A stretch of DNA of 64,000 nucleotides from Bugula neritina (lineage: Eukaryota; Animalia; Bryozoa). The stretch covers positions 7,097,751-7,161,750 of the forward strand of contig OZ037773.1 in assembly GCA_964035545.1 (NCBI GenBank), in the 5' to 3' direction. The notes under the pieces are model-generated. The model did not search any database, was not told where the DNA came from, and saw only the letters and a list, made by a program, of their open reading frames with translations. A program made the translations under genes and the position numbers. Of the stretch, positions 3,796-49,582 are shown piece by piece. The stretch's first letter is position 1. Every line of letters begins with the position of its first letter.

Positions 3796-3834
3796 GTTAC
3801 ATAACTTTAAGTTATATCAACATCATATAAAAAG
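3796..3834 (+). promoter_or_regulatory. Core promoter of paralog 1 (TATA box plus bZIP-like site)
   Basis: TATAAAAAG at 3826-3834, about 80 bp upstream of the ATG; GTTACATAAC at 3796-3805. The same arrangement is retained in paralog 2 (8804-8840). Confidence 0.6.
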
Positions 3835-3906: not shown

Positions 3907-6520
3907 ATGTGTAAGTATTTTATCTTTTATTTATTAAAATACAACTAAATTATATAAGAACCATGTACAATAGCTGATAATAGTTGTATACTGCTTTCAG
4001 TCACAGTTTAATATGAAAGTAAACTGTATAAGATTTGATTCAAAATAATGGAGTTTAAAAGTTGCATGTTTAACGTTTGTTTCAAAAAATTTCCCTATAT
4101 ATATATAAGTGAGACTTAAACCCAACTTACTTGTAAATAGTTAAAAATACTTACAAAATACATGAAAAATAATTTCTATAACTAACTATTGTTGTAATTT
4201 TATACCAAAACTTTTCTCTTATACCCTATTTTTTATGCTACCATCATTCATTAATTCATTACTATTATATCTGAATATGTGTCTATAGCATCTTCAAAGA
4301 AATTTTTAGTAGCAAAACTGAGTTTTAATTATTGAAATTGAATCTGTGTAAATTTTCTTTCTAGATAAAGTAACCCTCCTTTCAGTTGTTTGCTCTCTGC
4401 TATTTATTTATGGCGTGGAGTCTGCCAGCCTACACAGGTAAAATAATATAATTGTTCAATTGTAATAATTTCTTTAGAAACTGAAAAGTTTTAAGCTGGC
4501 TATCTATTGAATTTTCATCATTGCTAGTAATTATAACTACCTATGCAAATATATAAGTTCAAAGTAAATCTCGTTTCTACTTAGATAACACAATTTCTGT
4601 AAAGCTGCATATACTGCTGTTTAATCACAAACATCTAAGTTCATAATATTTGAAATACATGTAGTGTTCGTGAGAAGAGATCTATGGCAGCTTTCTGTAT
4701 CCCACAACTTCTAAGCAACCTGGAAAGATCTCACGCCCTGTTGGAACAACTGAACAACTATTATATCGTGAGTTCATATTTATTCTGTAAATAACTACTC
4801 TAATGTTTTGTAAACATAATGAAATACTTGAAAGAAAATATATCTCTTGACCTATTTTGTAGATGTTTAGCTTTTTTTATTTTGACACCATGCCCTACAA
4901 ATATTATGATATGACATTAAATATAAATTTGCTAACATAGTAAAGTATTATGTAATGATAAATACTATATTATAATAATGTAATGCAAACAAAATAACAT
5001 GATATGATTCTATACACACTATACTATCTGCTGTACTCATGTTCTAGGAACAATACTTCTGCGCCGGACAATGGGAAACTGCAAACATGAAAACAAGAGA
5101 TCTGAGCTGTGCGCATTTTGCTGTAAGTATAAGTATAAACTTACCTTGTAAAATGTATCACAGACTGGAATACATAACAGTACAATATTAAATAATATAA
5201 CTATTTTGTATTGGAACCTCTTTGGTTGAGCAAATTAAAGTCTACAGTTTGAGTCAGGTGTGATAAAAGCTTTGGTACACTTTGCATTGCTCACAGCCTG
5301 TAAAATAATTTTGCCCCCCCCCCCCTGAGATTCAAACCACACACCTCTGGCTTGCAAGCATGCGTGCTAACCAATTTCACTACAGGGGCTTTTGGATTTT
5401 TAACTGCATCATACTCAGTTTTTTCCAGAACTGCACTAGCCCCACGTAGTCATGTACTCTTGTCAGTTTATGGGCTCCACCCGCCACTCAACTCTCTGAG
5501 TGTACGACCATGACACAAAGCTGAAATAGCTTATGAAAAAAAATTTGCTTCTACTGGGATTCGAACATGAGACCTCCTGCTTGCAAGGGAGTGTGCTACC
5601 TACTACACCACAGCACTACTGGGTAAACTCAACATAACAATCGGTAATATAAACTGCATGGTTTTTCTTTGCTTTTAGAACATGACCTTAAACGAGGACC
5701 ACTCATCACCATTGGCTCAACACTTCTGCATGCTCAAGGCAACATTTCCTGAAAACTATGGCCCGCTGAGTCAAGTGTCAATGCTTATGCAGGGGGTATT
5801 AGTAGCAATGAATCAGACAGTACCTGAAGGACAGTGTAACCTTGAAAATGCTGTAAGTTGAAACCTCAACTCTTTCATTGCTAGTTTAAATTTTAATACA
5901 ATCATAAACGAAAGGTATACTTACTTGTGAATTGTAACTGGTTTTAATTTTACAGGGATATTGCTTTGATTTTTTTTATGCAAAGTGATATAAAGTCAGC
6001 TATTCGTAAAACCTTAAATATTTTTGATATGCATTAATACATCATTAGAGATTTTCTTACATCAGAAATCTTAATTTAAATTAAAAGTTGTTCCAAGGCT
6101 TGAACTCAGTTGCAAATATTACATAATGGCTTTACCTTGACATTTAGCTGTTGATTCCCAGTTTTGAATCATTTTAATTTAGAAAGAACTAATGCTATGC
6201 CTCGATACACAACAAATACCACGTTTTAGAGTTATTTTCTCTCATTTTCCATGCAGACTTGAGCATTCAACGTCATGGCTATGGGTTGTAAAATACTGTT
6301 TCTTGCATTTAAACAGGGTAAGAAACTGCAAGAAGATGGTTACGAGAAGGTGTACCGTGAACATCTCGCTAGCTTATTGGAAGATGTACTCTGTGTGCTA
6401 GACAGATGCGGTGAAATTACTCCAGAACATTTCCATTCAGAGGGAGACGATCACCATGATAATGATCACACTCACGAATCTATCACTGTGTTTGACAAAT
6501 GCTCTTCAGCCTCACAATAA
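3907..6520 (+). CDS. Secreted 8-Cys helical protein, paralog 1 (210 aa, His/Asp-rich C-terminal loop)
   Basis: Exons 3907-3910, 4365-4437, 4665-4767, 5048-5122, 5679-5852, 6317-6520; all GT-AG, 633 nt in frame. MYKVTLLSVVCSLLFIYGVESASLHSVREKRSMAAFCIPQLLSNLERSHALLEQLNNYYIEQYFCAGQWETANMKTRDLSCAHFANMTLNEDHSSPLAQHFCMLKATFPENYGPLSQVSMLMQGVLVAMNQTVPEGQCNLENAGKKLQEDGYEKVYREHLASLLEDVLCVLDRCGEITPEHFHSEGDDHHDNDHTHESITVFDKCSSASQ. Signal peptide, REKR site, AATAAA at 6690. Confidence 0.92.
5313..5617 (-). mobile_element. Two tandem degenerate tRNA-like sequences (TGC loop) in intron 4 of paralog 1
   Basis: 5313-5389 and 5547-5617 read on the minus strand with A-box (TAGTGAAATTGG / TGGTGTAGTAGG), CTTGCAA loop and B-box (GTTTGAATC / GTTCGAATC). 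Stems are mismatched. Absent from the homologous intron of paralog 2. Confidence 0.6.
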
Positions 6521-8081
6521 CTTTACATCACAAATATTGTTTGACTGTAGCTCAATAGAAATCTAGTTACCATGATTATTTGTAACCAGCCATTATTAAC
6601 ATAATTAAATGTAGATTTTTATTTCTTACTTGCTTACTTACTTTCTGAACTGATGTGTAGCCTCAGCATCCAATGTTTTGTAGCATTCAAATAAATTTCT
6701 GTTATCCAAAACAGCTACTGGTGTTGCTTTGAAGAAATTTTAGCATGGAGGCTTTAGTTTCCAATGAAAGACTCAAAAGCTTTTTAATAGTTGCCTTGAA
6801 ACGAGCAGTAATATAATAAGAAATGAAATATAATGAAACATGATAGTTTGCTGCTAAAGATCGCAAGTCATTAAAAAATACAACCTCTCACGTATATTCT
6901 CTCTCTTTTATACAAGAGTTGAAAATGACAAAATAGTTATTATGCACTTATTATTTAGCAATTGAACTTGCCTTAGTTTAAAATAAACTTGTAATATAGA
7001 AGGATTCATCTGTGATCCTCATACACAGCAAACACAGTAGCCTCTTCTCATGGGTGGTGGAGCTTTACTAAACATAACTTCCTACATAGTGTAGCGTTTA
7101 AGTTTAGTGTTTACTATGTGAGTCTTTCAAACTCAGAGTAAGAATAATATATTACACCAGCTTATATGTTCATGTTTATATAACATATTACATAATATTA
7201 TAATTATTATTAATTGTTTAATTCTTTATTTTATACCTCATTTATTAATACTATTTTTTAAGACGTTTTGAAAGCTAAATTTATAGCTAATAGCAACCTA
7301 ATAGTTAGCATTGAGCATATAAAATATGAAAGGAGCAAAAGTAAAAGCTGATGCCTACAATAATTGAACAAAATAGTGTTACAGAAACTAGTATTCAGTT
7401 TTAATTTGTTTTGTGTTTGGTTAATTATCACGTTCACCTAAAAGGGGGGGGGGGGAAGGTAACAACTTCTTGTGATCTATTGTTTATTTATACATTATAC
7501 TAGTTATACATTGTTGTTACATTTGCATATATTTTGGTTTTGAGCTGTTTCAGCTATTGGAATATATTAATTTTTCAAGACATTTTTTATATTTCTATGT
7601 TTTGAAATTGTATTTTAGTATCATGATTGATAGGTCTACCAGGAACATTAATAAATAAAATATTAATATATAATTCCACCAGATAACACTCATTTGACTT
7701 TTCCAACTACCAGGGTGTATGTGATGTATTCTATGACTCAATAATGGCCACCAAAACTACTAGTCAGAAGTTTATTTAAACATATAAATTCAAATGGTTT
7801 GTGACTTATAAATGTAAGTTGATTAACTTGAATGTAAATTGGTTCACCTAAGTGTAGATCGTAGTTCATAGTTCATACAGATCTAAAATGACTCATATAA
7901 ACATCTACCGCCAGCTTCTATTCAGATGGAGAATTGCAATAATTTAGTTTCTTTGATTACTTTTATGAATTTTGTGAAGGCCAGGGTTGCTGTTTAAAAT
8001 GTTTATATGAACCTCGCTTCTTTTTCTATAAGTTTTATTTAAACTACGCTAGGCTGTTCCCGATTTCTTAATAGCTACAGC

Positions 8082-8180
8082 AGGTTATAGCATGTCACTA
8101 GCTAGGTTATAACATGTCACTAGCCAGGTTATAGCATGTGACTAGCTAGGTTATAGCATGTCACTAGCTAGGTTATAGTG
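8082..8180. repeat. 22-bp minisatellite (aggttatagcatgtcactagct), about 4.5 copies
   Basis: Visible directly. Confidence 0.9.
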
Positions 8181-8914
8181 CATTGGACCTCATCATTATC
8201 CCCTTTTCGTTTATGATGTTTTTCTAAATGTTGTAAAACAAACCAACAAACAAGCCTTAATATAATGTTCATTATGACCAGCAACAAAATATTGAAACAT
8301 ATGCCAGATGGGTACACAACAATAGTCATGTTGTTGTGTTTTGTTATTTGTTCAATATTTTTCATGTCTGGGACAAATAATTGCAAGAGACTACTCAAAA
8401 TAACTAATAATATTATGTCAGAAGTTTCTGAGAAGATGGTAAAGCTCTTACTAATGGTAGAACATATGTAAACTCAACAGATTTTAGATTAAGTTTCAAG
8501 CAGAGGTTTTTAAACTCAGCTCCTTACTTATGGTAAGCTGCATCAACCCCTGAATAGCTCATTGTTTAGGAGTGCACCAAGTCTATGAACAATCGGATCC
8601 TAAAATGAAAGAATTACTTGGTATAATAATGTAAAACTGTTGCTAAAGTGGTTTAGATTCTTTTAGAGAAAAATAATTTTGAGTATTATTATGCATGTAT
8701 TTTAGTTACTAAAACAACATTCCCTGTTGCCTTAGTAACTAAAGTATACTGATCTTAAGTAAATATAGTGAAATCTAAGTACTCATTAGGGTTGGGCAAT
8801 ACTATTACATAACTTAAATCTATGCCAACGTCATATAAAAAGTAGTTAGAGTAGTTGTGATAGACACTCTCTTATAACTACAGCATCTCATCAGCTTTAC
8901 ATAGTACTCCAAAG

Positions 8915-11900
8915 ATGTGTAAGTATTTTATCTTTTATTTGTTGAAATATAACTAAATTATATAGGAACCATGTACAGCAGCTGATAATAGTTGTATGCT
9001 GTTTTCAGTTACTGTTTAATATGGAAGTAAACTGAGTTTTTTGACCGCATAGAGTTGGATTTTAAATAAAGGAGTTTAAAAGTTAAAGTTTAAAAGTTAA
9101 AGTTTCAAAAGATTTCCCCAGGGGGATTCAAACTTAACTTATTTGTAAATAAATAGTTTAAAATACAGTATAAGTAAATCATAATTATAATAATAATAAC
9201 TTATTACTATTGCTGCAATTTTATACCAAAATTCTTCTCTTATACCTTATTCTTATTATTTGTGTAATTTTTTTCTAGACAAAGTAACCCTTCTATCAGT
9301 TGTTTGCTCTCTGCTATTCATTTATGATGCGGAATCTGCCAGCCTACACAGGTAAAATAATATAATTATTCAATAAATTTGTAATCATTTCTTAGAAACT
9401 GAAATAGTTTAAGCTGGCTATTGGATTTTCCCCATATTGCTAGTAACTATAACTTTACAAATATATGAGTTCAAAGCAAATCGTGTTTCTACTTATATGG
9501 AATAATACATGGAATGTTTAATCACGAACATCTAAGCTCATAATATTTCAAATACATGCAGTGTTCGTGAGAAGAGATCTATGGCAGCTTTCTGTATCCC
9601 ACAACTTCTAAGCAACCTCGAAAGATCTCATTCCCTGTTGGAACAACTGAACGTCTATTATATCGTGAGTTCATATCCATATTCTATAAATAACTAGGCT
9701 CTACTATTTTGTATGTAATTTATTCAATGCAATGTATACAAATGCTCTACTATTCTGCATAAAAACTCTGCAAGTTTGCAGTCAACTTTCCGTAAGAAAT
9801 TCCTGATGAAAAAGGTTGTTTTTTTTTCATCCCAGTTAGACGCTAGGCTAAATTTCCCATTTGGATGCTTCCCATTTTTTATTTTGGTGCCATATGATTA
9901 CATAGTAATATTTACCTATATATACCTATAAGTATATAGCTGTTGCATTGATTGCTAAATAGCTAAAGTGCTAATAGCTATAATAGCTAACATGAATTAT
10001 CTGGAATAATATTCTAATTTTCATAGACTTGTGTGGGGTAAAAAAACAGTAATATATTAATAATAAACAGTATCTTTAATGAATGAAGACGTTCATTAAT
10101 GAAATATCTGTTCAAACAAGAAGCAAAAAATATGTAAAATTATTATGTTAATGAAGATCAAAAAAATGTATTTACTTGCTCAATACGGGCTTTATTTAAA
10201 TATACATATGTTTAAATAATAATCAAATAAATTGTACATAAAATATATATCGTACCAATATAAATAAATAGCGTCTATCTGGGATGACACCTCTTTTTGT
10301 TTAAGTGGGCTAAGGACTTATGTGTATGCGGCACAGGAGCAATTATGACTGGATGCTTTTCTTAAAATTCCCGAATGGCCTTTGCTGGGGCTTGAACCCA
10401 TGACTACAGATGTACTGAGTCAGCCCTCTAACCCCTAGACACGGCTGCTCCCCCATAGCTATTCTTTATACAACTATTTAAATGTCGTGTAAATATAATG
10501 AAGTGCTTGGAAGAAAATATATCTGACACATTTTGTAGAGGTTTAGCTTTTTTTTATCTCTATACCATTTCATATAAATATTATAAATTTACGTGTAAAT
10601 GTAATTTTGCTAACATAGTCAAATATTATGTAATAATAAATATTGTAATATTATAATGTAATGCAAAAAAGTAAGTTGATACAATTTTATACACACTATG
10701 CTATCTGCTTTGCCCATATTCCAGCAACAATACTTCTGCATAGGACCATGGGAAGCAGCAAACATGAAAACAAGAGATCTGAGATGTGAGCATTTCGCTG
10801 TAAGTATAAAATATATAAACTTACCTTGTATACCATATTATGAGCTGGATGAAAGTATAAATATAAACTTACCTTGTATAACCTTGTATTATGAGCTGGA
10901 GAGCATAAATTACACTAAATAACTTAATTATTTTGTATTGACACACCTTTGGTTGAGCAAATTGAAGTGTGACTTTCTAGCTTTACCTCTGCTGAAAATT
11001 ACCCATTTACAGTATTACTAAAACTTTGAAATTATATTGATGCGGAAGCTCACTTTTTACAATGTAATGCAAATTAAATTTCTGACTAAAAATCATAAAG
11101 GTAAAAACGCAACGTAATACTTTCTCCGCATTCCAGGTTGAGCAACCAATGACAGTAATTCAAATATCTTATGACTTGTTGTTTTTAGAACATGACCCCA
11201 AACCAAGACCATACAGAGCCTGTGGCTGAACACCTTTGCATGCTTCAGTCAGCATTTCCTACACACTATGGTATAATGACTGAAGTGACCTTGCTTATGG
11301 AGGGGGTATTAGCAGCAATGAATCAGACTTTACCTGCAGAGAAATGTGACCTTGAAAATGCTGTGAGTTGAAATATTGACCATTTCATTGCAAGCTTATA
11401 TTTTTGATTTGTTGGAATACTTTTTATATACAGTAACAACGTACCTATTCTTCATATACAGTACAATACATCTGGTTATTTTTATATACAGTAATATAAT
11501 CTATAATAACTTTTTATATACAGTAGTATATCATTAGAGACAGTATTATATGTTATGGTTTTGAAGTCTATAATGAGGAGAAAACATTATACACTCAGGT
11601 TGTTTATATTTCCAGAAGAAAGTTATGTGTCATGAAACTGACTTACAGACCAACCCGAATTTATATTTATTGAGTTCAAAAATTGTATATAAGATCTAAA
11701 CTGAAATTGTTTCAAGCTTTGAATGCAATTGCAAATAGAACTTGATGGCTTTACCTCAAAATTTGACTGTTGATTACTAGTTTTACACTGTGTTGGTTTG
11801 AACAAATTAAAATATACTACACCTATCTATAAGTATGAGTTGCATTTGCATTTTAAATGAATCTAGTATGCTAATGGTATGTGCGTTGAAAGAACTGATG

Positions 11901-12275
11901 CTTTGATACATTACAAATGCTGAGTTGTAATGTAAGGTTTAGAGTTATTTTCTCTCAACACTCCATGTAAACTTTACCATTCAACATCATGGTTATGGCT
12001 TGTTGCAGACGTTATAAAGTATATTTTCTTCCATTTCATTTCCACAGGGTAGGAAGAAATTGCAAGAAGATGGTTACGAGAAGGTGTATCGTGAGCATCT
12101 CGTTAGATTATTGGAAGATGTACTCTGTGTGCTAGACAGGTGCAGTGAAATTGCTCCAGAACATTCTCATTCCGAAGATCATCATGAAGATGATGATCAT
12201 CATGATCACCATGATAATGAGCACACTCATGAAGTTATCACCGTGTTTCAAGAATGCTCTCCAGTTCCAAGATAG
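8915..12275 (+). CDS. Secreted 8-Cys helical protein, paralog 2 (218 aa, expanded His/Asp-rich loop)
   Basis: Exons 8915-8918, 9279-9351, 9562-9664, 10725-10799, 11189-11362, 12048-12275; GT-AG, 657 nt. MYKVTLLSVVCSLLFIYDAESASLHSVREKRSMAAFCIPQLLSNLERSHSLLEQLNVYYIQQYFCIGPWEAANMKTRDLRCEHFANMTPNQDHTEPVAEHLCMLQSAFPTHYGIMTEVTLLMEGVLAAMNQTLPAEKCDLENAGRKKLQEDGYEKVYREHLVRLLEDVLCVLDRCSEIAPEHSHSEDHHEDDDHHDHHDNEHTHEVITVFQECSPVPR. TATA at 8834, AATAAA at 12454. Confidence 0.92.
9827..10288. mobile_element. Inverted-repeat-bounded insertion in intron 3 of paralog 2
   Basis: tcatcccagttagacgcta (9827-9845) versus tagcgtctatctgggatga (10270-10288), one mismatch as an inverted repeat. This intron is 1060 bp against 280 bp in paralog 1. 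Confidence 0.6.
10300..10453 (-). mobile_element. tRNA-derived SINE, 3'-truncated copy
   Basis: Reverse complement matches 13871-14030 (gggagcagccgtg..taggggttagag...gggttcaa.cccc..caaaggccatt...gcatccagtcataattgct). Confidence 0.85.
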
Positions 12276-13142
12276 CTTTACATCCCAAATATTGTTTGCA
12301 TGTGACTCAGTATAAATCTAATTACTACAATTGCTGACAACCTACTCAGCCAGTATTAACATAGTCAGATGTGTCTTTTTTGATTACCAGAGTTATGATA
12401 CTCACTTTCTGGACTGATGTGTAACCTCATTATTCAATGTTTTGTAGCGTTCAAATAAATTTATGTTATCAAACACAGCTACTGCTTTGGTTCTAAGATA
12501 TTTTGAGTAGGTATAAATAGTTTAGTGTCCAATGAAAAGCTTCAAAGCTTTTTAATAAAAAAGAAAAAATAAAAAAAGAATATAATGATATAACATAATA
12601 TAATGAAAAATGATAAGTTGCTGCAAAGATATCTAAAGCAGTTGAAAATCAAATTTTTTAAATGTTTTTTATCTTATAAAAGATTGATCAAAATGAGAAA
12701 ACAGTTATTGTGCATATGTTGAGTATTTAAAAATTTCCTAGTTTGCTAAACTTGTAACAAAGCTCCCATCTTTGATGAAAAATTCTCATACAATCACGCC
12801 CTGCAGGTGGCAGTATTTTACTAATTGCAGCTGAATAAATCCTAAATAATTGGCATTTAAGTTCAGTGTTTATTTCTCAAAAGTAAATATTATGTAATAA
12901 TATTATTATTTACTAGAGCTGGGAAGCACTTACACTGCTTCTAATAACTTTTAATCTAAGGATTAGAATGAGTTTAGATTCTCAGTACATCTAGACCAAA
13001 GGCACTGCTGAAAAGGAACAAGCAATCTGTTTACTTTGAACCTGCTTTAGAACCTGCTGTATATAAGTAGTGAGCACAGCTCAGCCTACACCTTATAGTG
13101 CTTCTGATTTCACTGTCTCACAAAGGATTTCACTGACTAGTA

Positions 13143-15065
13143 ATGGGTAAGAATATCTTGTGAGTCTTTCAAATTCAAAAAAAGAATAATGTATGGCAGC
13201 TGTTAGTATTTTTTCATTTTTATATAGCATACATAATTTTATTATCATTATTCAACTTTTTATTCTTGTTCAATTAGTTTTTTAAAGGAAAAACTAGCAA
13301 ACTTTGTTTTACATAAATTCAGCATACAACTTTTAGTAGCAGAAAGCTGGAGTCTAAAACAGTAAAGCTATATTTATATGCTCAGCATTTAAGTTTCTTG
13401 GCTTCATCCAAGACTTAATAATAATAATGTAGAAAAGAGTTATTTATCATGATATAGTTATATGTTGTTGTAGATAGAATGAGTCTCTTCTCAATGCTCT
13501 GTTTTCTGGTAGCTATTCACACCACTCACTCTGCAAGTCTCATCAAGTATGGACCATAATATCACTAGTTACTTGTGTATTAGTTTTTTTTATTTATGAG
13601 TATAAGATGGGAAATACTGCATATAATAGCCATATAAAGGTGACTCAAGTATAATGGTAGAAACAAAAATAGTTACATGAACACATCACTAGCAAGAAAT
13701 ATTACAATGTAAGACATGGTTGCCTTGGGTAGAACACATTTGTATTACTGTTGATACTAATGTATACCATGGTGTAACACATGTGTAGTACTGTGTAACA
13801 CATGCGTAGCACTGTGTAATACATATGTAGTACTGTATAATATATGTGTAGTACTGTATAATACAAGTAAGGGAGCAGCCGTGGTCTAGGGGTTAGAGCG
13901 TTCGCTTTGGGAACACGAAGTTGTGGGTTCAAACCCCGACAAAGGCCATTGGTGATGTTAGGAAGAGCATCCAGTCATAATTGCTTCTGTGCCTCATTTG
14001 AACGAGTCCTTAGCCCGTTCTAACAAAAACCCTTTCTATCAGGGGTTTCTCACAGGGATAGCGACTATAAACTTACGTGAGTTTTCTTTTGTATAATACA
14101 TGTGTAGTACTGTATAACACATGTGTAGTACTGTGTAGTACTGTGTAATACACATGTGTAGTACTGTATAATACATGTTTAGTACTGTATAACACATGTG
14201 TAGTACTGTATAACACATTCGTAGTACTGTGTAACACATGTGTTGTACTGGTTTGCAGGAAGAGGTCTCTACCAGCTCCATGTTCAGCCACCTTAAGATC
14301 CACACTTGACGCCCCTCTTGTACTGTTGGAGACTCTGAATCAGGATTACATTGTATGTATTTTTTGGCTCAGAATCTTTTCAGTTTCTAACTTTAAAAGC
14401 AAAAATAGAAAAAAAATTTATTTGAAATTATTTGAAAGAAAGATAGAGGTAAGGTAATAACTGTTTTACTGAGGCTATAATTACCAGGAGTTGCATAACC
14501 TATCATATGAAGCCCATGGGAAAACTAATGCACAATTATTACAAGGGTGTTACTTATTTCTGAAATTTCTATCCCATCAGATAATTACAGATCAAACAAA
14601 ACCCTTGTCTTGATGTAAAGTATAATTACTGAAAATTGTTTAACTAATGCACTTTTCTACAAAACAGTTTTGTTTTAAGTTTATCCAATTCTGGGGCTAT
14701 GTATACATGGAGTTGTCTCCTTTTTTATTTACTGTGATTACTATTATTGCTAGTGCTACTAGTTCATACTGGAAACTTCAGATAGAGGAAACCAGTATTT
14801 GTTGTATGTACAAGTAGTCCAGGATGTCTAAAAAATACTGATTGTCTTTTCATGCAAGAATTACAAACTACTTTTGTAAAAGTTCTGCTTTTTTAAAGCA
14901 TTTGTCTGCCTCAAACATAAAAGAATTTGGTGCTTAAAAATTTTAACTATTATTTTAAACAATATTTTAGGAAGAGCATTTCTGCACAGAAGTGAATCAA
15001 CATCCAGTCCAAGTAGTTCGGAATATTACCTGCGGCTACTTCAATGTAAGTAAAGTTACCTGCAG

Positions 15066-15162
<97 letters not shown>

Positions 15163-16114
15163 CACACGCACACACGCACACACGCACACACGCACACACG
15201 CACACACGCACACGCACACACGCACACGCACACGCACACACACGCACACACACACATGCACACACACACATGCACGCGGGCATATAATTACTGTATGGCT
15301 AGTGCCTTTATCAAACTGTAAATTACATCCTGCTTTAAGTCAGTGAAATAATAATTTTTATTTACTTTTAGTATATAGCAGCCCGGGGAGATTTGGCACG
15401 CAAACTGGATGAACACAGATGCATGCTGCAAGAAAGTTTCCCCTCTAATGATGTCCACAAGTTTGGCAGAATGGCAGCGTTCAGTGAACTTATTGATGCT
15501 ATCATCTCAGCCATAGATGAAAACGAAACAGGGGGCTGTGACAACTCTGCCCTTTACGTAAGTATTCTATATATGTAGACAGGGATACCATGGGAAGTGC
15601 TGGGGTAGTTTATTATCAACAGGAATACTGGGGTAATTTATTATATGCAGGGGTTTTTGTGTAGTTTCTTATATACAAGGATACTGGGGTAGTTTATTAC
15701 ACACAGGGATGTTAGGAGAGTTTATTATAGGGGGGGGGGGGTGGGGGGTGGGGGGGGTTATTGGGGTAGTTTATTATATACATGGGTTTAGGTCTAGTTT
15801 ATTATATACAATGATACAGGGGTAGTTTATTATAAACAGCTTTTTTCATAGATATTTACATTAATTAAAATCATTGATTTAACTCTGTTGAAGAATTATG
15901 CATAACTCAACAGAGTTACATCATGATTTATCTAACGATTTAGGTGAACAGAGTGAATGAAAGTGGTTACAACAATGTCTATCACAGCCATCTTGTACAC
16001 CTGTATGATGAGATATTGTGCACTAAGACTTCTTGTGAAAGAGAAGGTGGTCAGCCTGATGAAGAGCCCTTACTCTCTAAACTCCCTGTGTATATAAGAT
16101 GTCAAAGTAACTAA
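13143..16114 (+). CDS. Secreted 8-Cys helical protein, paralog 3 (200 aa)
   Basis: Exons 13143-13146, 13474-13546, 14259-14352, 14971-15045, 15372-15557, 15944-16114; 603 nt. [208 protein letters not shown] at 13060. Confidence 0.9.
13770..14250. repeat. About 21-bp minisatellite (gtagtactgtataacacatgt), interrupted by a SINE
   Basis: Units at 13770-13865 and 14090-14250; source of the MCYTVLH-repeat ORFs. Confidence 0.9.
13871..14085 (+). mobile_element. tRNA-derived SINE, near full-length copy
   Basis: A-box TGGTCTAGGGG and B-box GGTTCAAACC, then a body (ggtgatgttaggaagagcatccagtcataattgct) and tail (caggggtttctcacagggatagcgactataaac) shared with the copies at 10300 and 59745. Confidence 0.88.
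15067..15275. repeat. Compound (CA)n/(CGCA)n microsatellite in intron 4 of paralog 3
   Basis: Visible directly. Confidence 0.97.
15590..15835. repeat. Degenerate ~29-bp minisatellite (ggggtagtttattatata core) with a poly-G tract
   Basis: About 7 degenerate units; G-run at 15730-15757. Confidence 0.75.
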
Positions 16115-18501
16115 ACTATGCCCCAGAGGAAAGACAACTCTACTTAGTGACTGCTTGTTGTTATTTAACAAATTTATCAATTTATTTTTGATCTAATTTT
16201 ATACTTCAACTTTGCAATGTTGAATAGCTGCTATTTCTATTAAAGTAAAAATAGTTTGTTTATATTTCTAGTTTATGTTTATGGTATTAATCTAGCTACA
16301 AATGCACTAGAGTCTAGACTATAATAAAAATTAAAAGAATTGCATCTGCATGTATATATATCTCAATTTATTACAGTCATGACAGAGAAAAGTTTAATTA
16401 TATCGAAACTTAGTGACTAGGTCAATACCTTATATTATCTTGAACATGCTGATTTAGAGCAAGTTGTCTATTTGTTTATATTCAAAACTTGAACAGCGGT
16501 CTCAATAAACTCAATTTCTTGATATTTCTCTGAATAGCATTCGAAGTACTCCAGATTAAAAGTTCCAGTTTAAAATTTTGACAGTCTGAAGATGTAAAGC
16601 TGTTTTAGTTAGAAGAATATAAGTTATGTTAACACGGGACATTTGATCTGCACCCCAAATCAAAAATTTATAATAATATTAAAATAATCTAGGCTACACA
16701 AAAAAGTTTAACTTGTGTCCTAAATTAGAATGCGTTGAAATTAAAAAATTAGCTACTGAAACTTCCCAGTTTTGGCACTTGAACGAAATGTCTAGTAGAC
16801 AGTCTTGTGCAGTTAGCTAAAAGTAGTGTTGAAATAATGTTACATAACCACCTAAACTAGTGCCTTGTTTAATACCATCACAGCCAGATTAAAGTATATT
16901 TAACTGCACTGTGCACTTAGAAAATGAAACTTTAAAGAACAGAGTATGAAAAACCAAATTCTAACATTTACCAGCACATGCTTTGCACAGCACTAGATGA
17001 AGTATGGCTTATAAGTTTCATTAATTATTTTCAGACTATTTGCTAACATCAGTTGTGTATTAGCATTGATCAAGTATTTTGAAAAGTAGACATAACTTTC
17101 ATAAATAAAATCTCCTTTTGATAATTTATCGTTAATCAAGAGCTAGGAGGAAAATAACATTTCTGACCAAGGATCCTTTGGGTAATATTCTATTTGGTTC
17201 ATCCATTTGACAAGAGTTGAAAGAATCTCATCTCCATGCTGATGGCTAAAACTTTAAATCCCAAAATGCAATTTTTTTGCAAAATTAAATTAACAAATCT
17301 TAGCCTGAATGAAACTTTATTTTATAGACCAAGATGTTGACAAGTAATTCATTAGAAATGTACTATTCTCATTGTATCCATTCTAGTCATTAAAAGTAAT
17401 TTATGTATCATAAGAAATGCTTGTAATTTGGATATATAGAATTTAGGCAGTCAAAAAAGAAATTTAGCTTGATTTAGTCACTTAGAAAGTATTTTCCTTT
17501 ACATTTAATTTGATAGTCTCAATAAAAAACAGTTTATTGCAAATATTTTTCTGCACCATTTGAGGCATGAACCATCCCTTATAATGACTAAAACAACATC
17601 GTTATAGCTAAAAACTACACATTTTAAATGTGGCTACATTTACTTTGTGCTCAATCTTTTCCCACCAACATAATATTAAATATCTTGTTTACTTTAACCA
17701 GCTAGGTATTTCTATACCAGTTTACAATAAATATAAGCCGAGTGCATTTTTGCTCTCATTCTTTAGATTAATTATGAATTCAACTGTTTCTGAAATTTTC
17801 TTAGCAAACCAGCTTTATATTCTCACTTTGATTATCTTCTTAAGTTTGTAGGTGCAGTAATAGAAAAATTTAGAAAAGCCAGTACACTTTGTTGGAAATG
17901 TAGCAAAAGAAGTTATGCTCTTTTGAAAATTTCAACTCCCAAACCAAAATTTATTAAAAAAGTTTAAAAGTTGTAGGCTATTAAAATTTCTTTACTGTTG
18001 CACTTGAAGTTCGCTAGTTTCAGTTTTGCTAGTTTTTTATCTCTTGACTATGGAAGCCGTTAGCCAAACCAAACAAAAATGAAGTAGTAAACAAGTTTCC
18101 AAATGCACCTATTAAAAAGTTTTGTCTGCGGCTGTTGCTATTATCTAGGTACTAGGACATGTTCTCTCAGCTCAGCGGTTTAGTGCAGGTTACTTAAGAG
18201 ATAGATATCTATTACCTTTAACTTCTGTTGTAAATATCCCAATGTCTTTTGTAATTGAAAGGTACAAAGACATCATTATCTAGCAACGCCATGGAATAAA
18301 TGCAGTCATTTGGTCTAATTTATAGACATATGGCGGTGTTTGCATACTGATTTAAACACCTTTATTACCATGGATGATAGGTAACTCATTTCTACCAGTT
18401 TTCAGGTATAAAAGCTGCTTATAAATACTGGAGTTCAGTTATTTACAGCTAGCTGTTGGGTCTTTTAGCTTCCTGGTCATATGCTGAATTGGAAACTAGC
18501 A

Positions 18502-20873
18502 ATGAGTGAGTATATTTGCTGATAGTAGTAATGGCAAGTAGATTCTATAGAATGCCATAGGATTATTTGATACATTTTTGAAAAGTAATTAAATTTAGTT
18601 TGAAAAGTAAAAAAAAGTTATGTTTGTAAATGTACAAAAGCTGAACTAAATAAAAAAACTAGTATAATAAAAAAAAATGTTACTGAAAACTTGGCTAAAA
18701 TACTAAATCAACATAATTTTAGGTCAGCAGTATTTAGCTAATTTTAATAAACAAATTTTTTGCTACTTTGGAAACAATATTGTGTTTCTCTGCATTATTT
18801 GCTGGCTCTAGTTACACAAATGTTTACTTTTTTTGAGATCAGATTTATGCAAAATATTTTATAAATAACTTTTGTCCACAACTTTTATTAGTAAAGCTAA
18901 AGCTTGCATCAATAGAATAGTGAATGAAAAAAGGGGTTGTATATTATTTTTAATCATTTCTTTCTGGTTAAAATTTGTAGATAAAGTAACTTTTTTCTCC
19001 GTTTTCTGCACCTGCACCGTGTTGTTCATCTATGCAGTTGAATCTGCCAGTATTCACAGGTTTGTAAATATTCTCATACAATCATAACATTAAATTTAAT
19101 TGTGTAGAATTAAATGTTTATTTTACTTCTTTGTTCTTTGAACCGAGTTAAAGTTGCTTACAGCGTACCTTCTATTTTAGCATTCATTAGATTGGTTTAG
19201 CTTAACAAGAAATTAATTCTATTGGTTACAGGAATATTTTCCGTGTAGCTCGAAAGGAAAGGTCATTAAGTGCATTTTGTGCTGCGGAGCTGACAACGAA
19301 GCTGAATAATTCGTTGGGTTTATTAAAGACTCTGAATGACTTCTACATTGTAAGTTCTTACAAGAATGTCTAAACTGCAAAGATATGGATTGTCTTTAAT
19401 CTTATATTATAAGTTTCTATAATATATTTTGAATTTGTGGTATGTAGGGGCCTGAGCAATGAAACGATTATTTGAATAAGCTTAGAAATGTAGTGATAGT
19501 ATGTTATAAATTTTGTTTGATTAAAGTAAAAAGAGATTGCATCTAACTTTCTCGGGTGTCTTGGAAGTTTGTCCAGAGAGATCATTTTTGTAATAAAGTT
19601 GAATAGAAAGGAAATGTTAATAACTGGAATTTGGTTTCAGGATCAACACCTTTGTCCTGGAGCTGGCAAACAACCAACTTATGCCAGTGCCTACTTAACC
19701 TGCAGCTACTTTGAAGTGAGTGATGTACTATCAAAGTTTGGCCAGAATTTATAGTCTTCATGTTTTGATCTTTAAGCAAATGGGAGCTAAGATATTCCAT
19801 GTTGCAATTCATATTGCTTATAACTTGCCTATATCTCATTTGAACTATTAAAAAAGAAGGGAGATACTAAAAAAGAAATTGTTTGTGACGTTTCAATGTA
19901 GTTTTATTTTTTGTTAGCATTTGATCACTGAACGCAAGCTTGCTAATGAATTACATGAAAATCTTTGCTTGCTGGAAATTGCAATGTCGAAAGACCACCC
20001 AGAACTAGCTCAGCTTAATGAGAATGTCCGTTATGTCATCGGAATGATCACATCTGACGAAGCTCTTGCTGTTTGTGACACAACTCATTTCGTGAGTTAA
20101 TAGTTAATGTATATATTAGTTTAAGATTTCATTAAAAACACAGCATTGAAATATTTTAATTTTACTAAAATGATGAAAGCTGTAAAATCTATTTTTAAAA
20201 CTAAATTTGCTAGGTCGATGGTAATAACCAAAACTCTCTACACACACAAGTTTTCAACATACTAGTTGAGTAAATATGTAAAATCCTAATAAATTTCAAA
20301 CCATAGATTCATTTATTGGGAATATTTGTGATCTTGTTTAGGTTTTAGTTGTTTTTTTAAATTATCTGCTATTAAAACAAAACACAAGTTTTTATTCAAT
20401 TCTTGTTGGCCATTATTATACAGATGAATCGGACTGAGACGATTGGTTACCATAACGTGTACTACAACTCTCTAGTTCCTTTATACGACCACAGCATATG
20501 TGCATTAGCCACCTGCAACCTGCAGGAGAGTATATCTTCAGAAGACCAAGAATCTTCTGCAGAACCAGAATCTAGTGCGGAAGACCAAGGATCTTCTGCA
20601 GAGCCAGAATCTAGCGCAGAACCAGAGTCAAGTGGAGAATCTGAGGTTAATGCGGAGCCAGAGTCCAGTGCAGAACCAGAATCTAGTGCAGAACCAGAGT
20701 CAAGTGGAGAATCAGAGCTTAGCGCAGAACCTGAGTCTAGCGCAGAACCAGAGTCTAGCGCAGAACTCAAGTCTAAAGCGAAGCGAGAGCTTAGTGCAGA
20801 ACCAGGGTCCAGTGCATCATACTTGTATTCTGATTTGCCTGTTTTTATAGAATGTATAGATGCCAACATGTAA
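18502..20873 (+). CDS. Secreted 8-Cys helical protein, paralog 4 (299 aa, acidic SAEPES-repeat insert)
   Basis: Exons 18502-18505, 18981-19059, 19232-19349, 19641-19715, 19918-20091, 20424-20873; 900 nt. MNKVTFFSVFCTCTVLFIYAVESASIHRNIFRVARKERSLSAFCAAELTTKLNNSLGLLKTLNDFYIDQHLCPGAGKQPTYASAYLTCSYFEHLITERKLANELHENLCLLEIAMSKDHPELAQLNENVRYVIGMITSDEALAVCDTTHFMNRTETIGYHNVYYNSLVPLYDHSICALATCNLQES...(SAEPES)n...YLYSDLPVFIECIDANM. TATAAAAG at 18407. Confidence 0.9.
20535..20817 (+). repeat. Coding 18-bp tandem repeat (SAEPES hexapeptide, about 15 units)
   Basis: In frame within the last exon of paralog 4, with synonymous variation between units. Confidence 0.9.
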
Positions 20874-21790
20874 TGGTTGTAGTCTTATCCTTCAAACAGT
20901 GTTGAAGCAGAGAATACCTGCATGAGTTTATACTACACTCCTGCTCTTATAAAGTAAAACCAAATATACTCACAAAATTAAGCTAAAATATAAGTCTTTT
21001 CTTTTCTGTCAAATATATACCTCAGAAACAAAAAAGTGAAATAGATCAAACCGTGACAATCCTAAATAATCTTCTAATTCAACTAATGTCTGATTGTAGT
21101 AATCATCAACTTTTTCTTATATAAAGAACTAACTTGATGCTAAATATAATTTATTAACATAATTTATATTGCAGTTCATCAATCATTGAAAACTTTTAAG
21201 CAGAAGTTTTTAATAATTTTGTTTAGAAACATAATATAAGTTTAGAAGCTTTAGATTTTCAATCAAATTTAGACATTGCAAAAACTAAAAAAGTTCATGT
21301 TTACTAATTTTGAAGGAAAACAAAAATGTTGTGTTTTCAAGAACAAGGCTTACTTAAGCACCAAGTAAACTTAATTCAGCGATAGGAAATAAACTGAACT
21401 TACACATATGGCAGTACAAACGTTTTGCACTCAACTTACTTATAATAGAACAAGTGAACAAAACATGAAACTTTCTAAGCATTCTATTTTTAGGTACAAG
21501 ACACAATTAAATTTGAGCCCACCTGGTGTTCTTATAGATCTTATTCTATAATAATGAATAGTTTTTAGTGAAATTATAGTCGCAAATAAACAACCCTAAT
21601 AATTATATAGGTAGGTGTAAACTCATACCCAATAATTTGTCATAGACTTAAACAGAAGGTTATTATTATCATTATCTCCGTCAAATAACACATTGAAAGT
21701 TTATAACAAACCAACAGTCTCTATTCTACCTCAGAGAGTATCAGATTCCTTAACCTTCACCATACTGTTCACATCTTTCTACTAAAAATC

Positions 21791-24447
<2,657 letters not shown>

Positions 24448-25646
24448 TTTCGGCAGCTAAGAGTAGATGCTGCCAACAGCAACCCTAGAACTTCCCTAGT
24501 ACGGAGTTCAGTTGCTACAGTGTAAATTTTGGTATATTATTATATCACCCAATGTTTCTCACGTTTTACATTCATATCATCAGATCAGAATATTAAATGC
24601 AAAAATAAACCTTGAAAATTTTAACAGTGTTGCTATATATTATTTATAAATATAATCATACTAAAACAAAACTGTACATAAAACACATCCCAATGTAATA
24701 CACAAAATTTTTGACTTGTAGAAGTTTAGGCTATAGATGTCTTGCATCTCATTGGTTAATATTTAAGAACATTAGATTACATTGACACTGCCCTATAAAC
24801 TGGTGTTTTTGACACTAAAATAAATATGTTGTTGTTTAATTTTTATGCAATACAATATGGGGAAACAAGAAATTTGTAGAAAAAACTATTTTCAATTTAA
24901 AGACAACAAAATTTGTTACAAATTGTTAGCCTCACTTTGTTCTACAGAGCTACTACCCTGTATAATGTATATATGCATAAGATTTATATAACATTTCACA
25001 AGTCTGCATTCTATTATATTAAAGTTATTTTGAAGACTTTCTGTGTTTTCCAAATCTTGAGATCATTATGGATTTTCTGGTAAATATAGAAACCTAAAGT
25101 TGAATAATCATAGGATCTAAGAGTATCTATTGAAAAACTGGTTTATATATATATATATAAGCCATGAAGTTTTATGGGTACATTTCATTGATAATAACAA
25201 ATCAAGAGTAGTTTTAAATGACTTATTAAACATTTCTAACAGAAAATCTGTGCATTAGACAAAAACTAAATCTCTCTACGTAATACAAATTCTGCAGGGA
25301 ATAATGCCACAATATTTAAGTAGGCTTAAACAGTTGAATAAAAGAATTTCTGGGCAACTTAAACAGTACTTCTTTGGTGTATACAGGTATTACAGCATAA
25401 TGAGCTTGAATGTATTATATCTTATTCTTATCCAGTGAATTTATACACAATGTACAGCAGTAATTACCAAAGTTTCAAAGGTCTGGTTTCTTTATCAAAT
25501 GAATTTGAAAGCTTCCTAAGCTGGTTTTAGACAAATATAATTCTTAGATTTAAATAAGAAGCTTACAAACTTAAAAGAGTACAGCAGGTATATATATAGT
25601 ATTATTTAATAATTTCTTGCTTCAGTTGATTTGTGGAACCGTCAAG

Positions 25647-28600
25647 ATGAGTAAGTATATTACACAGATTGGCTGTATATTTTATTATAAAATGTAGAAA
25701 ATAATTCCCTATAGTGTATAGCGTCTAATCATATGTTTTTTAATACAAATTTATATTTATTTATTTGATTTTTAAAGCAAGCTATAATGACAGACCTATA
25801 ACTACTAAGAATTTGACTATGCTAATATTGAAACTAGATGAAGGATTTTTTTTCAGAAGTATCTCATAGTAATAAAAGCTCCTAAATTAGAGTTAAGATA
25901 ATTAAAACTCTCAAACATGTAGAAGATGGAAGAAACTGGAAATTATTATTTGCTTTATTGAATTTCATTATCTATTAGTACTATAAGTATTATTTGCTTG
26001 CCAAACTGCTACTATTCTATCAAATATTTTGCAGATAAAGTGATCTTTTTCTTTGCTTCTTGCTCTCTTTTTATCCTAGCAGAGACAGCTACAATTAGCC
26101 CTAAAAAGTGAGTTACAAATCTTATATATGCTTTACCTATATGCATGTAATCATCAGCCACTTTGGCATTCTGTATGAGCGAGTTTTTAGTTGAAGTTAT
26201 CTTGATGTCTTCCTTTGTGTGGTTTTTTATTTTTTTTATATAAATAACCAATCTAGAAATCATTTTTCTGAGCTGCAACTGCATAAAAATGTTTTAGTGT
26301 ACACAATCCACACCAAGTTAAATGCTTTAATGTGAGGCCAATATAAGATATATTTTTGTTTCAGTGTTTAGTTGAGCTTTTTGTTTATTCAGGAAGTAAT
26401 GCAAATTACAATGTAAGACTTGACAAAATAGTGTAGTGAATTTTGCCAGTTCACTATTATTATTTGTGGGTCTACTTAATCAAAGCCACTGCGACAGGTT
26501 GTTTACGATAAGATATTTTATTAGTTATACAAATACAAGAAGGTTATTTACTGCTAGCATGAATAGAAAATGATTACATAATTAAAGAGCTTTAATACAC
26601 AACTGTTCTAAATGAAGTCCCAAGCTGCTCTGCCGGCTAGCTACTCAGCGCACTGCAACTACGAGTAGCTAGCTCCACCTGCTATCAATTAGTGTGACTG
26701 TCCTGATTGGCTAGCGTTAGTGGTGCCACTGTCGCCTGTAAGATATTGTCGGGTAACCGTCTACGCCGAGTCGTCTCTGTCGCTACTAATTAACTCCATC
26801 ACCATAAGCATAACACTAGCATCTGCTACTAAGCAGCTAACTGCCAGTGCAAACCATCTACGCCTCCTACAGTTGTTGATTCCATTTAACTAGTCTTGCC
26901 TTGTTTAACTGCGTGCATTAGTAGCTAGCAATAATTGTCCAGCAGATTGTACGCATTCCAATTGTCAGCTATTATGATAATTGATCTCCAGTACTTATAG
27001 CCATTATGCCAAGCGTATAGAGAGTAAGCCACCAAGAGTTATCCTTTCGATAATAACATAATCTGAAATCCATTACAATAGCTCATCACCTTATTGCGTG
27101 TTGAATTCTACATAAAATGCTTTTAGAATGCACTTTTAAATATTAATTGAATTAACTTTTGTACCACGTAACTCTAGCATTTGAAAATATTTTAAAGGTG
27201 ACATCAATTGACCAAAGCAACTAGTATCAATAGAAAAAAATTTTTTATTTTCAACGTCTCTCTGCAGCAAACAATTCACAATTTATTAGTGTTCTAACCA
27301 AAGACGCTTATAAGTGAAAGTTAATAAAATTAAAGTGTAGGTTTAGGCAGTTGAAAATAATTTTACCTTAGATAGAGATGACAACTGCAAGCTATGAGTT
27401 TTTATTTCTACTTCACAGTGGGGAGTTGCCATCTTACTGCACTTTTCCGGTCATATTCAATCTGAATCGAACTCAATCACTCATCAAGACGCTCAACAGA
27501 CATTACATTGTAAGTTATAATCCTTTACACCAGCTTCACAATGGCTGGCATATCTTGGAACTTCAACTGGAGCATAAAATGGTGTTTATTGATTTACTTG
27601 TATATCTGAATTCTTTTTAATAAATAGGAACATAAAAAAGTACACACAAACCAGCAAGAAATCAATAGACAGTATAGCTTTACCACTTCATAGATTTAAA
27701 GTTTACTATTATATCAAGTAATAAAGCTTGATTTTCATCATTGATAACAGTGAGGAGTAGATAAAGAGGCACAAAAAGGCAATGAATTATAATACAATAA
27801 GCTATATAAAACTTTATAATGACAAATATGCTACAGTAAACTTAGAAATTACCCCTTGAACCTTAGTTTCGTTATATATGTATACTTGTGCTGTTACAGG
27901 CTCATTTCTTGTGCCCTGAACAAAACCACACTCTGGTGTACACTAACCGATCAATAGACTGCGCGAACTCAGAGGTAAGCTCATTCATTGGTCACCTTTC
28001 ACCGCCGTGGTCCTGCGCGGGTGGCGGGATTTATTGGATCATATTGATTACCATGGCGGGATTTATTGGATCATATTAAAGTTGCTATAGTCTATACTAC
28101 ATTTCCAGTCACAAAACATCATTGTTTGGCACTCATATGAATATAGTTACTACTTGCTAATGTGTATAGCTTCTTATAATCTCTTGAAGTATATCAATAA
28201 TTTGCAATTTAAACAACAATAAATCTAATGCAATGTTTTTTGATAGATAACTTATGTCATAACTTTTAAATATAAATAGAAAGTCAATCTGTGTTAGTTC
28301 ATCTGCATACTCATTGCCACATCTATCTAGTCCATGTCCTCTAACAACTACGCTTGAATTAATTTTCAATATAAACTTTATCCATTTCTCCTGACATCTA
28401 CTACAATATAATACATCCACAGCGTCCAAAAAAAGAACTGCTGTTTGTTTTTCTACTCAATGAAGTTGACCGTGCTTTAGGTGGTACACCCAGACACTTT
28501 ACCAGAGAAGTTAGATAGACACAGGTGTGCACTAAAACACTCGTATGATGTGTATCACATACAAACACGAAACCTAAACCACCGAATGTCTTATCTAACC

Positions 28601-29442
28601 AACAAACTCAAAACGGACAGTGCAACCAACTGTGAGAACTACTCCGAGGTAACGTTTATCTCCATGGTTATTATATATATGAATATTTATTCACATTGAG
28701 ATGACAACTTCCTTTTGAAATAGCTGAATCATAAAATTATGAAAGTATTATTGATTAATTTTGTTGCATTTACAGTCAGTCTGACTAATAAGTCTGCTTG
28801 CCTGCATGTAACTGCACATTGTTTAGTCGCTTAGCATGCTGTTTACTTGGTATTTCATGTCCAAAATAGTTATTCAAAATTTCTAAAATTGACCTATCCT
28901 TCTAAATTATTTTTTACTTTCAATTTCTATTTTGTGACAAGAGTCAAAATATTTTTAACATTCTTATTTAATGTACTTATATATGTCACAGCAATAGTTA
29001 TTTGAAGTTATTTCATTTAAAACTACACAAGGCATGCCTCAATAAATGCTCTTAAACTTGTGAAAAACTTATATGTGAGTCTGTTTTTGCTTTTTGAATA
29101 ATTAAAAAGTTGTCTGACAAAGACTATCCCTGAAGCAATTCAAGGACAGTTTTTTATTGAATTTTGTGGTGCACAAAAAAATTTTATTGTAAAAGCTAGA
29201 TTTTTCAAGTTTCAATTTTGAAATTACTGAAACCACACTGGTCACTAATTACTGTATAACTAAAATACAGTTTATATTATTGGAACCCAATATATACTTT
29301 GTAGATAAAACATGCGCCTTGCTTGACCACATACAACGACCACCTTATCAAGCTCCATGAAGACATTGCCTGCCTGTTGCAATCCTGTGGAAAAGTTTCC
29401 GACACTAAAATTAATACGTTTGTCCGCTGTGAGCCAAAATAA
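25647..29442 (+). CDS. Secreted helical protein, paralog 6 (182 aa, 9 Cys, most divergent)
   Basis: Exons 25647-25650, 26035-26107, 27419-27509, 27900-27974, 28481-28648, 29305-29442; 549 nt. MNKVIFFFASCSLFILAETATISPKNGELPSYCTFPVIFNLNRTQSLIKTLNRHYIAHFLCPEQNHTLVYTNRSIDCANSEVVHPDTLPEKLDRHRCALKHSYDVYHIQTRNLNHRMSYLTNKLKTDSATNCENYSEIKHAPCLTTYNDHLIKLHEDIACLLQSCGKVSDTKINTFVRCEPK. TATA at 25589, AATAAA at 29574. Confidence 0.88.
26604..27058. mobile_element. GC-richer insertion with TGTT...AACA ends (possible solo LTR) in intron 2 of paralog 6
   Basis: Clear compositional shift and TG..CA ends with a weak inverted repeat; no clear target-site duplication. Confidence 0.35.
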
Positions 29443-49373: not shown

Positions 49374-49582
49374 TCACAACTGAAGCTCTCCTTTGTGAAC
49401 TGATCTTGAGTGTTTGTAAACTTTCTTTGGATTGTGAATATTCTTGTACAAGCACAGCTTGCATTTCGCTTGTCTACTGTGGGCCTTATAAAGATGCTTC
49501 TTGAAAGTTTTTTTGTCTTTTGAGGTAAAAGAGCATTGACGGCAGGTATATTCTTCTCTGTGTGGTTTATTCTTTTTTTGAT
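49374..49582 (-). CDS. Intact-looking exon encoding two C2H2 zinc fingers (likely source of the 152-bp satellite; may be pseudogenic)
   Basis: ctttgcag acceptor followed by QKKNKPHREEYTCRQCSFTSKDKKTFKKHLYKAHSRQAKCKLCLYKNIHNPKKVYKHSRSVHKGELQL* (C-x2-C-x12-H-x4-H and C-x2-C-x13-H-x4-H). Upstream exons not identified. Confidence 0.45.

Follow-up and report, generated by a model that had tools for sequence, protein, structure and literature searches.

A conserved family of predicted secreted eight-cysteine proteins, extending beyond one tandem array, in the bryozoan Bugula neritina

GH, PRL, IL-6 and G-CSF are secreted proteins with a mature length of ~150-190 aa and four main helices, joined by the long, short and long connections that an up-up-down-down cytokine bundle needs. 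Their genes open with a short first coding exon that ends in phase 1, and phase-0 introns divide helix A, the AB loop, helices B and C together, and helix D. Among helical cytokines and hormones, which diverge very fast, only the arthropod Unpaired ligands are to our knowledge established outside vertebrates, and we know of no established protostome helical cytokines other than Unpaired (Upd1-3), themselves known only from arthropods. This report concerns an array of six plus-strand genes for eight-cysteine proteins in a 64,000-nucleotide stretch of DNA, referred to here as the window, from Bugula neritina. The window is C9:7097751-7161750 (contig OZ037773.1) of assembly tzBugNeri2.1 (GCA_964035545.1), which comprises 216.00 Mb in 320 scaffolds plus the mitochondrion (PMC11480708). 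Its source is a cheilostome bryozoan and it is AT-rich, with a G+C content of ~32%. Six intact genes are present in this region and belong to a larger Bugula family, the products of which may act as secreted ligands.

The eight-cysteine gene family

Gene models for the six array genes (g1 to g6, in order along the window) were rebuilt mechanically, exon after exon, by length, phase, splice-site and cysteine criteria. In the first 31 kb, the motif ATGN followed directly by GTRAG is found at exactly six places, the six gene starts listed in Table 1, and the first exon of each gene consists of this ATG plus 1 nt. Exon 2 is AG-bounded, hydrophobic and 73-85 nt long, and it keeps the frame in all six genes; in g5 its acceptor was picked by homology, the alternative acceptor being at 22222. 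Exon 3 runs from phase 2 to phase 0, and Cys1 is placed 24 residues before its end. Exon 4 is 75 nt long, has AG..GT borders and contains C-x15-C in six of six genes, exon 5 (168-186 nt) carries C.L...F and a second Cys, and the terminal exon 6 carries C-x4-C and then the final Cys. The joined coding sequences, 549-900 nt in length, are all open in frame and encode products of 182-299 aa, and the 30 introns without exception have GT-AG borders, with pyrimidine-rich acceptors and phases 1,2,0,0,0. The single architecture that an earlier note on this DNA had proposed for six plus-strand genes was thus reproduced, as was its eight-cysteine signature, for which the spacings found (27, 15, 19/20, 34-38, 27-31, 4 and 13-112 residues) were identical to those claimed. 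One gene, g6, adds a further Cys (residue 143); it also has no dibasic site and is the most divergent of the array.

Pairwise protein identity within the array is 23-34%, with the exception of g1 and g2, which are 76% identical and represent a recent segmental duplicate in which the introns can be aligned as well. Despite the low identity, full-length hidden Markov models built with one paralog left out scored the omitted paralog at 84-154 bits, so that homology within the array is far above chance.

A search of the whole assembly with profiles of exons 5 and 6, repeated with widened profiles, showed that the family has at least 13 genes: the six in the array on C9 and seven more (numbered g7 to g13), namely a tandem group of three on C3 and single genes on C4, C5, C6 and C8. 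The family of six genes described in the earlier note was therefore real in its members but too small in its count. In all seven dispersed paralogs an exon 5-like piece is succeeded, on the same strand, by an exon 6-like one, and the conserved cysteines of both exons are complete. The tiny first exon, ATGN followed by GT(A/G)AG, was seen at four of them (g7, g10, g12 and g13). Where the dispersed paralogs were traced, exon 3 mostly ended in Y-(Y/F)-(I/V), like that of the array genes, and exon 4 was 69-78 nt long with two cysteines. A length of exactly 75 nt, which had been claimed for every exon 4, holds for the six array genes and for g7 and g10, but not family-wide, since exon 4 has 69, 72 or 78 nt in four dispersed paralogs. 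The family is real, conserved and larger than six genes.

Contigs from a sibling lineage, reached through an open reading frame (ORF) fragment of the g2 ortholog (P0001, contig L008), allowed the conservation of individual genes to be followed. Between g2 and its sibling ortholog, exon 5 is 92.5% and exon 6 is 90.5% identical, the sole gaps being a 6-column (two-codon) indel in exon 6, and the intron between these exons is 82% identical with 85 gap columns. The ratio of nonsynonymous to synonymous substitution rates (dN/dS) was 0.10 for g2 and 0.44 for g11 and its ortholog, and the g9 ortholog in the 2020 draft genome has ~95% protein identity across exons 5-6. These comparisons indicate that the orthologous exons are under purifying selection in the sibling lineage. 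The 3' flank of g2 was also more conserved (90% identical) than the intron, which fits a 3' untranslated region (UTR).

Not every member has been retained. The sibling lineage has a broken g3: the 5' half of the gene is absent at a junction found in two independent assemblies, where the g2 3' flank runs directly into the middle of g3 exon 5 (L008:1302-1356 and 1719-1909, also in L009), and its exon 6 carries a 5-nt deletion. Therefore, g3 is a pseudogene there, and this loss, taken with the wider set of paralogs, indicates that the family evolves by gene birth and death.

The family had also been described as unannotated, and this was borne out, as the protein collections searched contained no full-length product but only fragments and partial or broken models. 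A protein search with 13 exon-6 pieces recovered two JGI fragments and the partial NCBI model EB796_016964 (P0007), all from Bugula; a JGI metagenome fragment (P0006) is part of the g1 ortholog. When EB796_016964 was used as the query it matched itself alone. Against 1.84 billion representative proteins, the exon-6 profile gave one true match, an 82-aa ORF fragment of the g2 ortholog, again from Bugula; four other matches were bacterial repeat proteins and were discarded as spurious. A metagenome scan with one family alignment gave no match. No Pfam family was matched at expectation values (E) up to 10 by ten exon 5 and exon 6 pieces or by P0007, and PDB sequence searches with four profiles and P0007 found no cytokine and no credible match at E up to 10, the exon-level profiles having low sensitivity. 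In leave-one-out comparisons, single-exon profiles scored only 3-38 bits, versus 84-154 bits for full-length models, and distant relatives would therefore have escaped. As judged by these searches, this appears to be an orphan family, with relatives outside Bugula undetected in the collections searched.

Several identities were considered and rejected. The Pfam models of stanniocalcin, saposin-like proteins, odorant-binding proteins (OBP), MANF and CHH gave no match at E up to 10 with the same ten exon pieces and P0007, and the cysteine patterns of these families differ from that of the Bugula family.

Two irregular models were noted among the orthologs. In the 2020 draft genome (GCA_010799875.2), a 1-nt deletion in the g11 ortholog (L017:2159-2240) swaps the final ...LDYCE for a tail without Cys, which reflects either a true loss of Cys8 or an error of the draft assembly; in addition, the contig end truncates the annotated model of this ortholog. 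At L017:8654-12237, a 357-aa AUGUSTUS model spans the g9 ortholog and continues beyond the g9 stop codon, probably because two tandem family genes were fused in it.

Precursors, predicted helices and likeness to known systems

Every product begins with a hydrophobic signal sequence, and N-glycosylation sequons are found in every member. In 7 of the 11 members checked, a convertase-type site lies 4-6 residues ahead of Cys1: REKR↓S in g1 and g2, KKR↓S in g3 and g11, RKER↓S in g4, VEKR↓S in g9 and RNRR↓S in g12, where the arrow marks the putative cleavage point. Such a site was found in none of g5, g6, g7 and g10. R-x-(K/R)-R and KKR are the consensus of furin-type proprotein convertases, and because this consensus stands before Cys1, a short pro-segment is probably removed. 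A signal peptide followed by such a site is the arrangement of a convertase-processed precursor, and the family motif points to precursors of this kind. Toward the other end of the protein, a conserved (P)VFxxC carries Cys8, and the loop between Cys7 and Cys8 is short in 10 of the 13 members; it is His/Asp-rich in g1 and g2 and contains ~100 aa of SAEPESS-type repeats in g4 (20517-20855).

Secondary structure was predicted from exon fragments, with AlphaFold2 run on single-exon alignments of exon 5 and exon 6. Exon 5 was modeled as two helices (residues 5-22 and 28-48 of the g3 exon) separated by a five-residue turn, with a predicted local distance difference test score (pLDDT) of 76 and a predicted template modeling score of 0.60, and exon 6 as one 32-residue helix (H3-34) followed by coil, with a pLDDT of 69. 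In exon 3, the family-averaged hydropathy of the 24 residues from Cys1 to the exon end peaks at a period of 100-110 degrees, and beyond its opening positions this segment contains almost no Pro or Gly; the helical periodicity fits a fourth, N-terminal helix. The four helices that the earlier note had placed in exons 3, 5 (two) and 6 were thus supported by these predictions. A Foldseek search with the exon-5 hairpin model was uninformative, and searches of the ESM Atlas returned nothing usable.

The predicted layout begins with helix A, followed by a link of ~29 residues that carries Cys2 and Cys3 (exon 4 and the start of exon 5) and by helix B with Cys4. A short turn leads to helix C, and a link of ~16 residues with Cys5 leads to helix D, which ends in Cys6-x4-Cys7 and is followed by a loop of 13-112 residues and (P)VFxxC. 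On exon fragments, then, the connections are long between A and B (~29 residues), short between B and C, and long between C and D (~16 residues). A disulfide map consistent with this predicted layout can be drawn for an up-up-down-down bundle, and another for a plain up-down bundle that has a stapled excursion.

As predicted, the Bugula family shares with GH, PRL, IL-6 and G-CSF the secreted nature, mature size and four long-short-long connected helices described above. With GH and PRL in particular it shares cysteines at three places: the AB loop, the end of helix D and the C-terminal tail. These proteins have 2-6 cysteines, as against eight in the Bugula family, which also has a phase-2 intron behind its signal-peptide exon, a putative convertase-cleaved pro-segment and, in some members, large low-complexity inserts; the Pfam and PDB searches found no sequence or profile similarity between them. 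The gene plan of the GH/IL-6 type is present, apart from the additional phase-2 intron, both in the phases 1,2,0,0,0 and in the correspondence of exons to predicted helices. However, many genes have introns between structural modules, and a phase-1 intron within the signal peptide is common in secreted-protein genes, so that the phase parallel is suggestive rather than diagnostic. The cytokine-like intron phases reported in the earlier note therefore stand as a pattern, together with the exon-to-helix map, but they are not specific to cytokines.

CSF-1, SCF, Flt3L and IL-34 are dimeric, short-chain ligands of class III receptor tyrosine kinases, and, as predicted for the Bugula proteins, they are disulfide-rich helical molecules; two motif resemblances occur in helices B and D, in the same order. 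Their cysteine spacing is unlike that of the Bugula family, and the PDB searches detected no such chain at E up to 10. Because the mature cysteine count is even (eight), there is also no obvious free Cys for an interchain bond, unlike in the CSF-1 group. The likeness to CSF-1 that had been proposed for these proteins was not upheld, given that no CSF-1 chain was found in those PDB sequence searches and that the second motif depends on a Cys present in g6 only.

The remaining comparisons are with invertebrate proteins. Drosophila Unpaired proteins are likewise secreted, glycosylated and helical, and are encoded by clustered paralogs that diverge beyond the reach of sequence searches, but they are about twice as long and no similarity to them was detected. 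The arthropod CHH/ITP neurohormones are all-alpha, disulfide-locked and freed from precursors at dibasic sites; they are, however, ~72 aa long with six cysteines in another pattern, and there was no Pfam match. Insect OBPs are small, secreted, helical and Cys-stapled, and also form fast-evolving tandem arrays, but they differ in cysteine spacing and gene structure, lack a pro-segment and gave no Pfam match.

Coordinates, transcription signals and other features of the window

Table 1. Positions of the six array genes and of the associated promoter and polyadenylation signals in the window
Feature	Position	Strand	Product or offset	Exons
g1	3907-6520	+	210 aa	3907-3910, 4365-4437, 4665-4767, 5048-5122, 5679-5852, 6317-6520
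g2	8915-12275	+	218 aa	8915-8918, 9279-9351, 9562-9664, 10725-10799, 11189-11362, 12048-12275
g3	13143-16114	+	200 aa	13143-13146, 13474-13546, 14259-14352, 14971-15045, 15372-15557, 15944-16114
g4	18502-20873	+	299 aa	18502-18505, 18981-19059, 19232-19349, 19641-19715, 19918-20091, 20424-20873
g5	21791-24447	+	208 aa	21791-21794, 22240-22324, 22832-22937, 23176-23250, 23501-23671, 24262-24447
g6	25647-29442	+	182 aa	25647-25650, 26035-26107, 27419-27509, 27900-27974, 28481-28648, 29305-29442
TATA box, g1	3826-3831	+	81 nt before ATG	
TATA box, g2	8834-8839	+	-81	
TATA box, g3	13060-13065	+	-83	
TATA box, g4	18420-18425	+	-82	
Weaker TTTATAA, g5	21700-21706	+	-91	
TATA box, g6	25589-25594	+	-58	
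First AATAAA after stop, g1	6690-6695	+	+170	
First AATAAA after stop, g2	12454	+		
First AATAAA after stop, g3	16323	+		
First AATAAA after stop, g4	21388	+		
First AATAAA after stop, g5	24604	+		
First AATAAA after stop, g6	29574	+		

Promoter and polyadenylation signals accompany each of the array genes (Table 1). The background rate of TATAWA is ~3 per kb, and an equal TATA offset in three independent promoters is therefore unlikely by chance. These positions place the transcription start such that exon 1 is made up of a short 5' UTR, the ATG and one base. An AATAAA is found 130-520 nt past the stop codon in each gene. With regard to splicing, the g11 ortholog has an independent AUGUSTUS model, EB796_016964, built with transcriptome hints (PMC7576161), in which the phase-0 junctions between exons 4, 5 and 6 are exactly the homologous ones.

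Repeats occupy parts of several introns. In intron 4 of g1 (5200-5640) there is a very high-copy interspersed repeat, at which summed contig depth reached 4,000-16,000 in all three DNA runs, versus ~100-250 around it, with many alternative joints. Intron 2 of g3 contains a minisatellite of 21-nt units (13700-14300), the source of spurious ORFs on either strand and of repetitive peptides in several reading frames, and long CA/TG microsatellites, which were left out of the read alignment, occur in intron 4 of g3 (15050-15290) and intron 5 of g5 (23786-24040). Elsewhere in the window, tandemly repeated ORFs with zinc-finger-like CKLCFYKNIH...H motifs were seen on the minus strand at 44800-49600. 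The open frame at 59301-59765 has a signal peptide and a sulfatase-type N-terminus (CTPTRSQL), and an arylsulfatase gene likely has its first coding exon here.

Possible functions of the family

The explanation that we favor, tentatively and with a probability of roughly 40%, is that these genes encode a family of secreted ligands that are matured by a convertase and have four helices and four disulfides. Under this explanation, the precursor would consist of a signal peptide, a short pro-segment ending in RxKR or KKR in most members, and a mature domain of ~150 aa, and it would be cleaved by a furin-type convertase in the secretory pathway. The mature protein would be all-alpha, with helix A from exon 3, a Cys-stapled link, a B/C hairpin from exon 5 and the long helix D from exon 6, and its eight cysteines would form four disulfides. 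The proteins would be released as small glycosylated helical bundles and may act through binding to partners, as diffusible ligands of the hormone, cytokine or growth-factor type and not as enzymes, a view supported by the finding of no catalytic or known domain in the Pfam searches. The secreted ligand family that the earlier note had proposed is in this way partly retained: these are conserved genes for secreted proteins, and the convertase site adds to their ligand-like look, but the CSF-1 likeness does not form part of the case.

Several observations weigh against a ligand family. The bundle topology and the disulfide map are guesses, as only single exons were modeled. Cytokines do not usually contain long loops like the His/Asp-rich ones of g1 and g2 and the Ser/Glu-rich one of g4, which are reminiscent of metal-binding or matrix proteins. 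Fast divergence within a tandem array would be no less expected of immune effectors, reproductive proteins or binding proteins. Jak1_Phl, FERM_F1 and SH2_1 were not detected by an exon-wise search of the genome, although this search had no positive control and was a weak test. Finally, a search for sequencing runs found three, from one study, none of them recorded as RNA; when aligned to the region they proved to be DNA contigs, one matching the assembly and two from relatives that are ~92% alike, and they contained no intron-skipping joints.

This negative RNA result, with the lack of a full-length product in the public protein collections searched, could be taken to mean that the genes are non-functional, either decayed copies or frames and splice sites assembled by chance. 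Intact frames in six of six genes, 30 canonical introns, purifying selection across lineages, eight cysteines conserved over 13 paralogs and TATA boxes at a fixed offset make this very improbable. A role as defense effectors, that is, as secreted antimicrobial, toxin-like or pathogen-binding proteins diversifying under host-pathogen conflict, would fit an array of paralogs with an identity of only 16-34% and the loss of g3 in the sibling lineage; metal chelation by the His-rich loops of g1 and g2 is conceivable, and convertase-cleaved pro-segments are common in defense peptides. However, the orthologs are strongly conserved, as seen in the dN/dS of g2, and positive selection left no sign in them. 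The mature proteins also lack the marked cationic or amphipathic character of lytic proteins, and neither Pfam nor PDB sequences revealed similarity to saposin-like or other helical antimicrobial families. Defense appears unlikely. High conservation of orthologs is similarly difficult to reconcile with gamete-recognition or other reproductive proteins, although the rapid divergence of paralogs and the restriction to one lineage would suit such a role, and we give it little weight.

Two further explanations take the unusual loops or the predicted all-alpha, disulfide-locked fold as their starting point. Structural or matrix proteins of the lightly calcified skeleton, the cuticle or the larval adhesive might use a Cys-rich scaffold with loops that bind mineral or metal, and the ~100 aa of acidic Ser/Glu/Pro repeats in g4 and the His/Asp-rich runs in g1 and g2, all between Cys7 and Cys8, are paralog-specific low-complexity inserts of the kind typical of biomineralization proteins. 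Because the loop is short in most of the family, these inserts are secondary, and the small size, convertase site and single compact domain would be atypical of matrix proteins, which makes this explanation quite unlikely. Carriers of small hydrophobic molecules, comparable to insect odorant-binding or saposin-like proteins, would be expected to be small, secreted, all-alpha and disulfide-locked members of a fast-diverging tandem family, and lipids, pheromones or polyketides made by symbionts, such as bryostatins, are conceivable cargo, given that B. neritina handles large amounts of lipophilic bryostatins (PMC7576161). The cysteine pattern is nevertheless unlike the OBP, CSP, nsLTP and saposin signatures, none of which was found by Pfam, and a convertase pro-segment would be unusual in a carrier; we regard the chance of this as small, though above that of a reproductive role.

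Within the favored explanation of convertase-matured ligands, a narrower possibility is that this is a true up-up-down-down cytokine or hormone family of lophotrochozoans, signaling via a receptor of the Domeless/gp130-like or receptor-tyrosine-kinase kind. This cytokine reading is plausible but unproven, and in its full form we consider it unlikely. STAT is widespread in spiralians, and STAT_bind was found at two loci in this genome, C4:3714168-3714910 and C5:11198359-11198481. If the narrower possibility were true, these would be the first such ligands outside arthropods and chordates, and the orphan cytokine-type receptors and STATs of spiralians would gain candidate ligands.

Even without the cytokine reading, these genes make up an orphan family of at least 13 members, of which the protein collections searched contain at most broken forms, and with a 4-nt first exon and short exons throughout, such genes escape ORF-based views of a genome. 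With a GH/IL-6-like gene plan, a convertase site and four predicted helices, the Bugula family is a concrete and testable candidate for helical ligands in spiralians.

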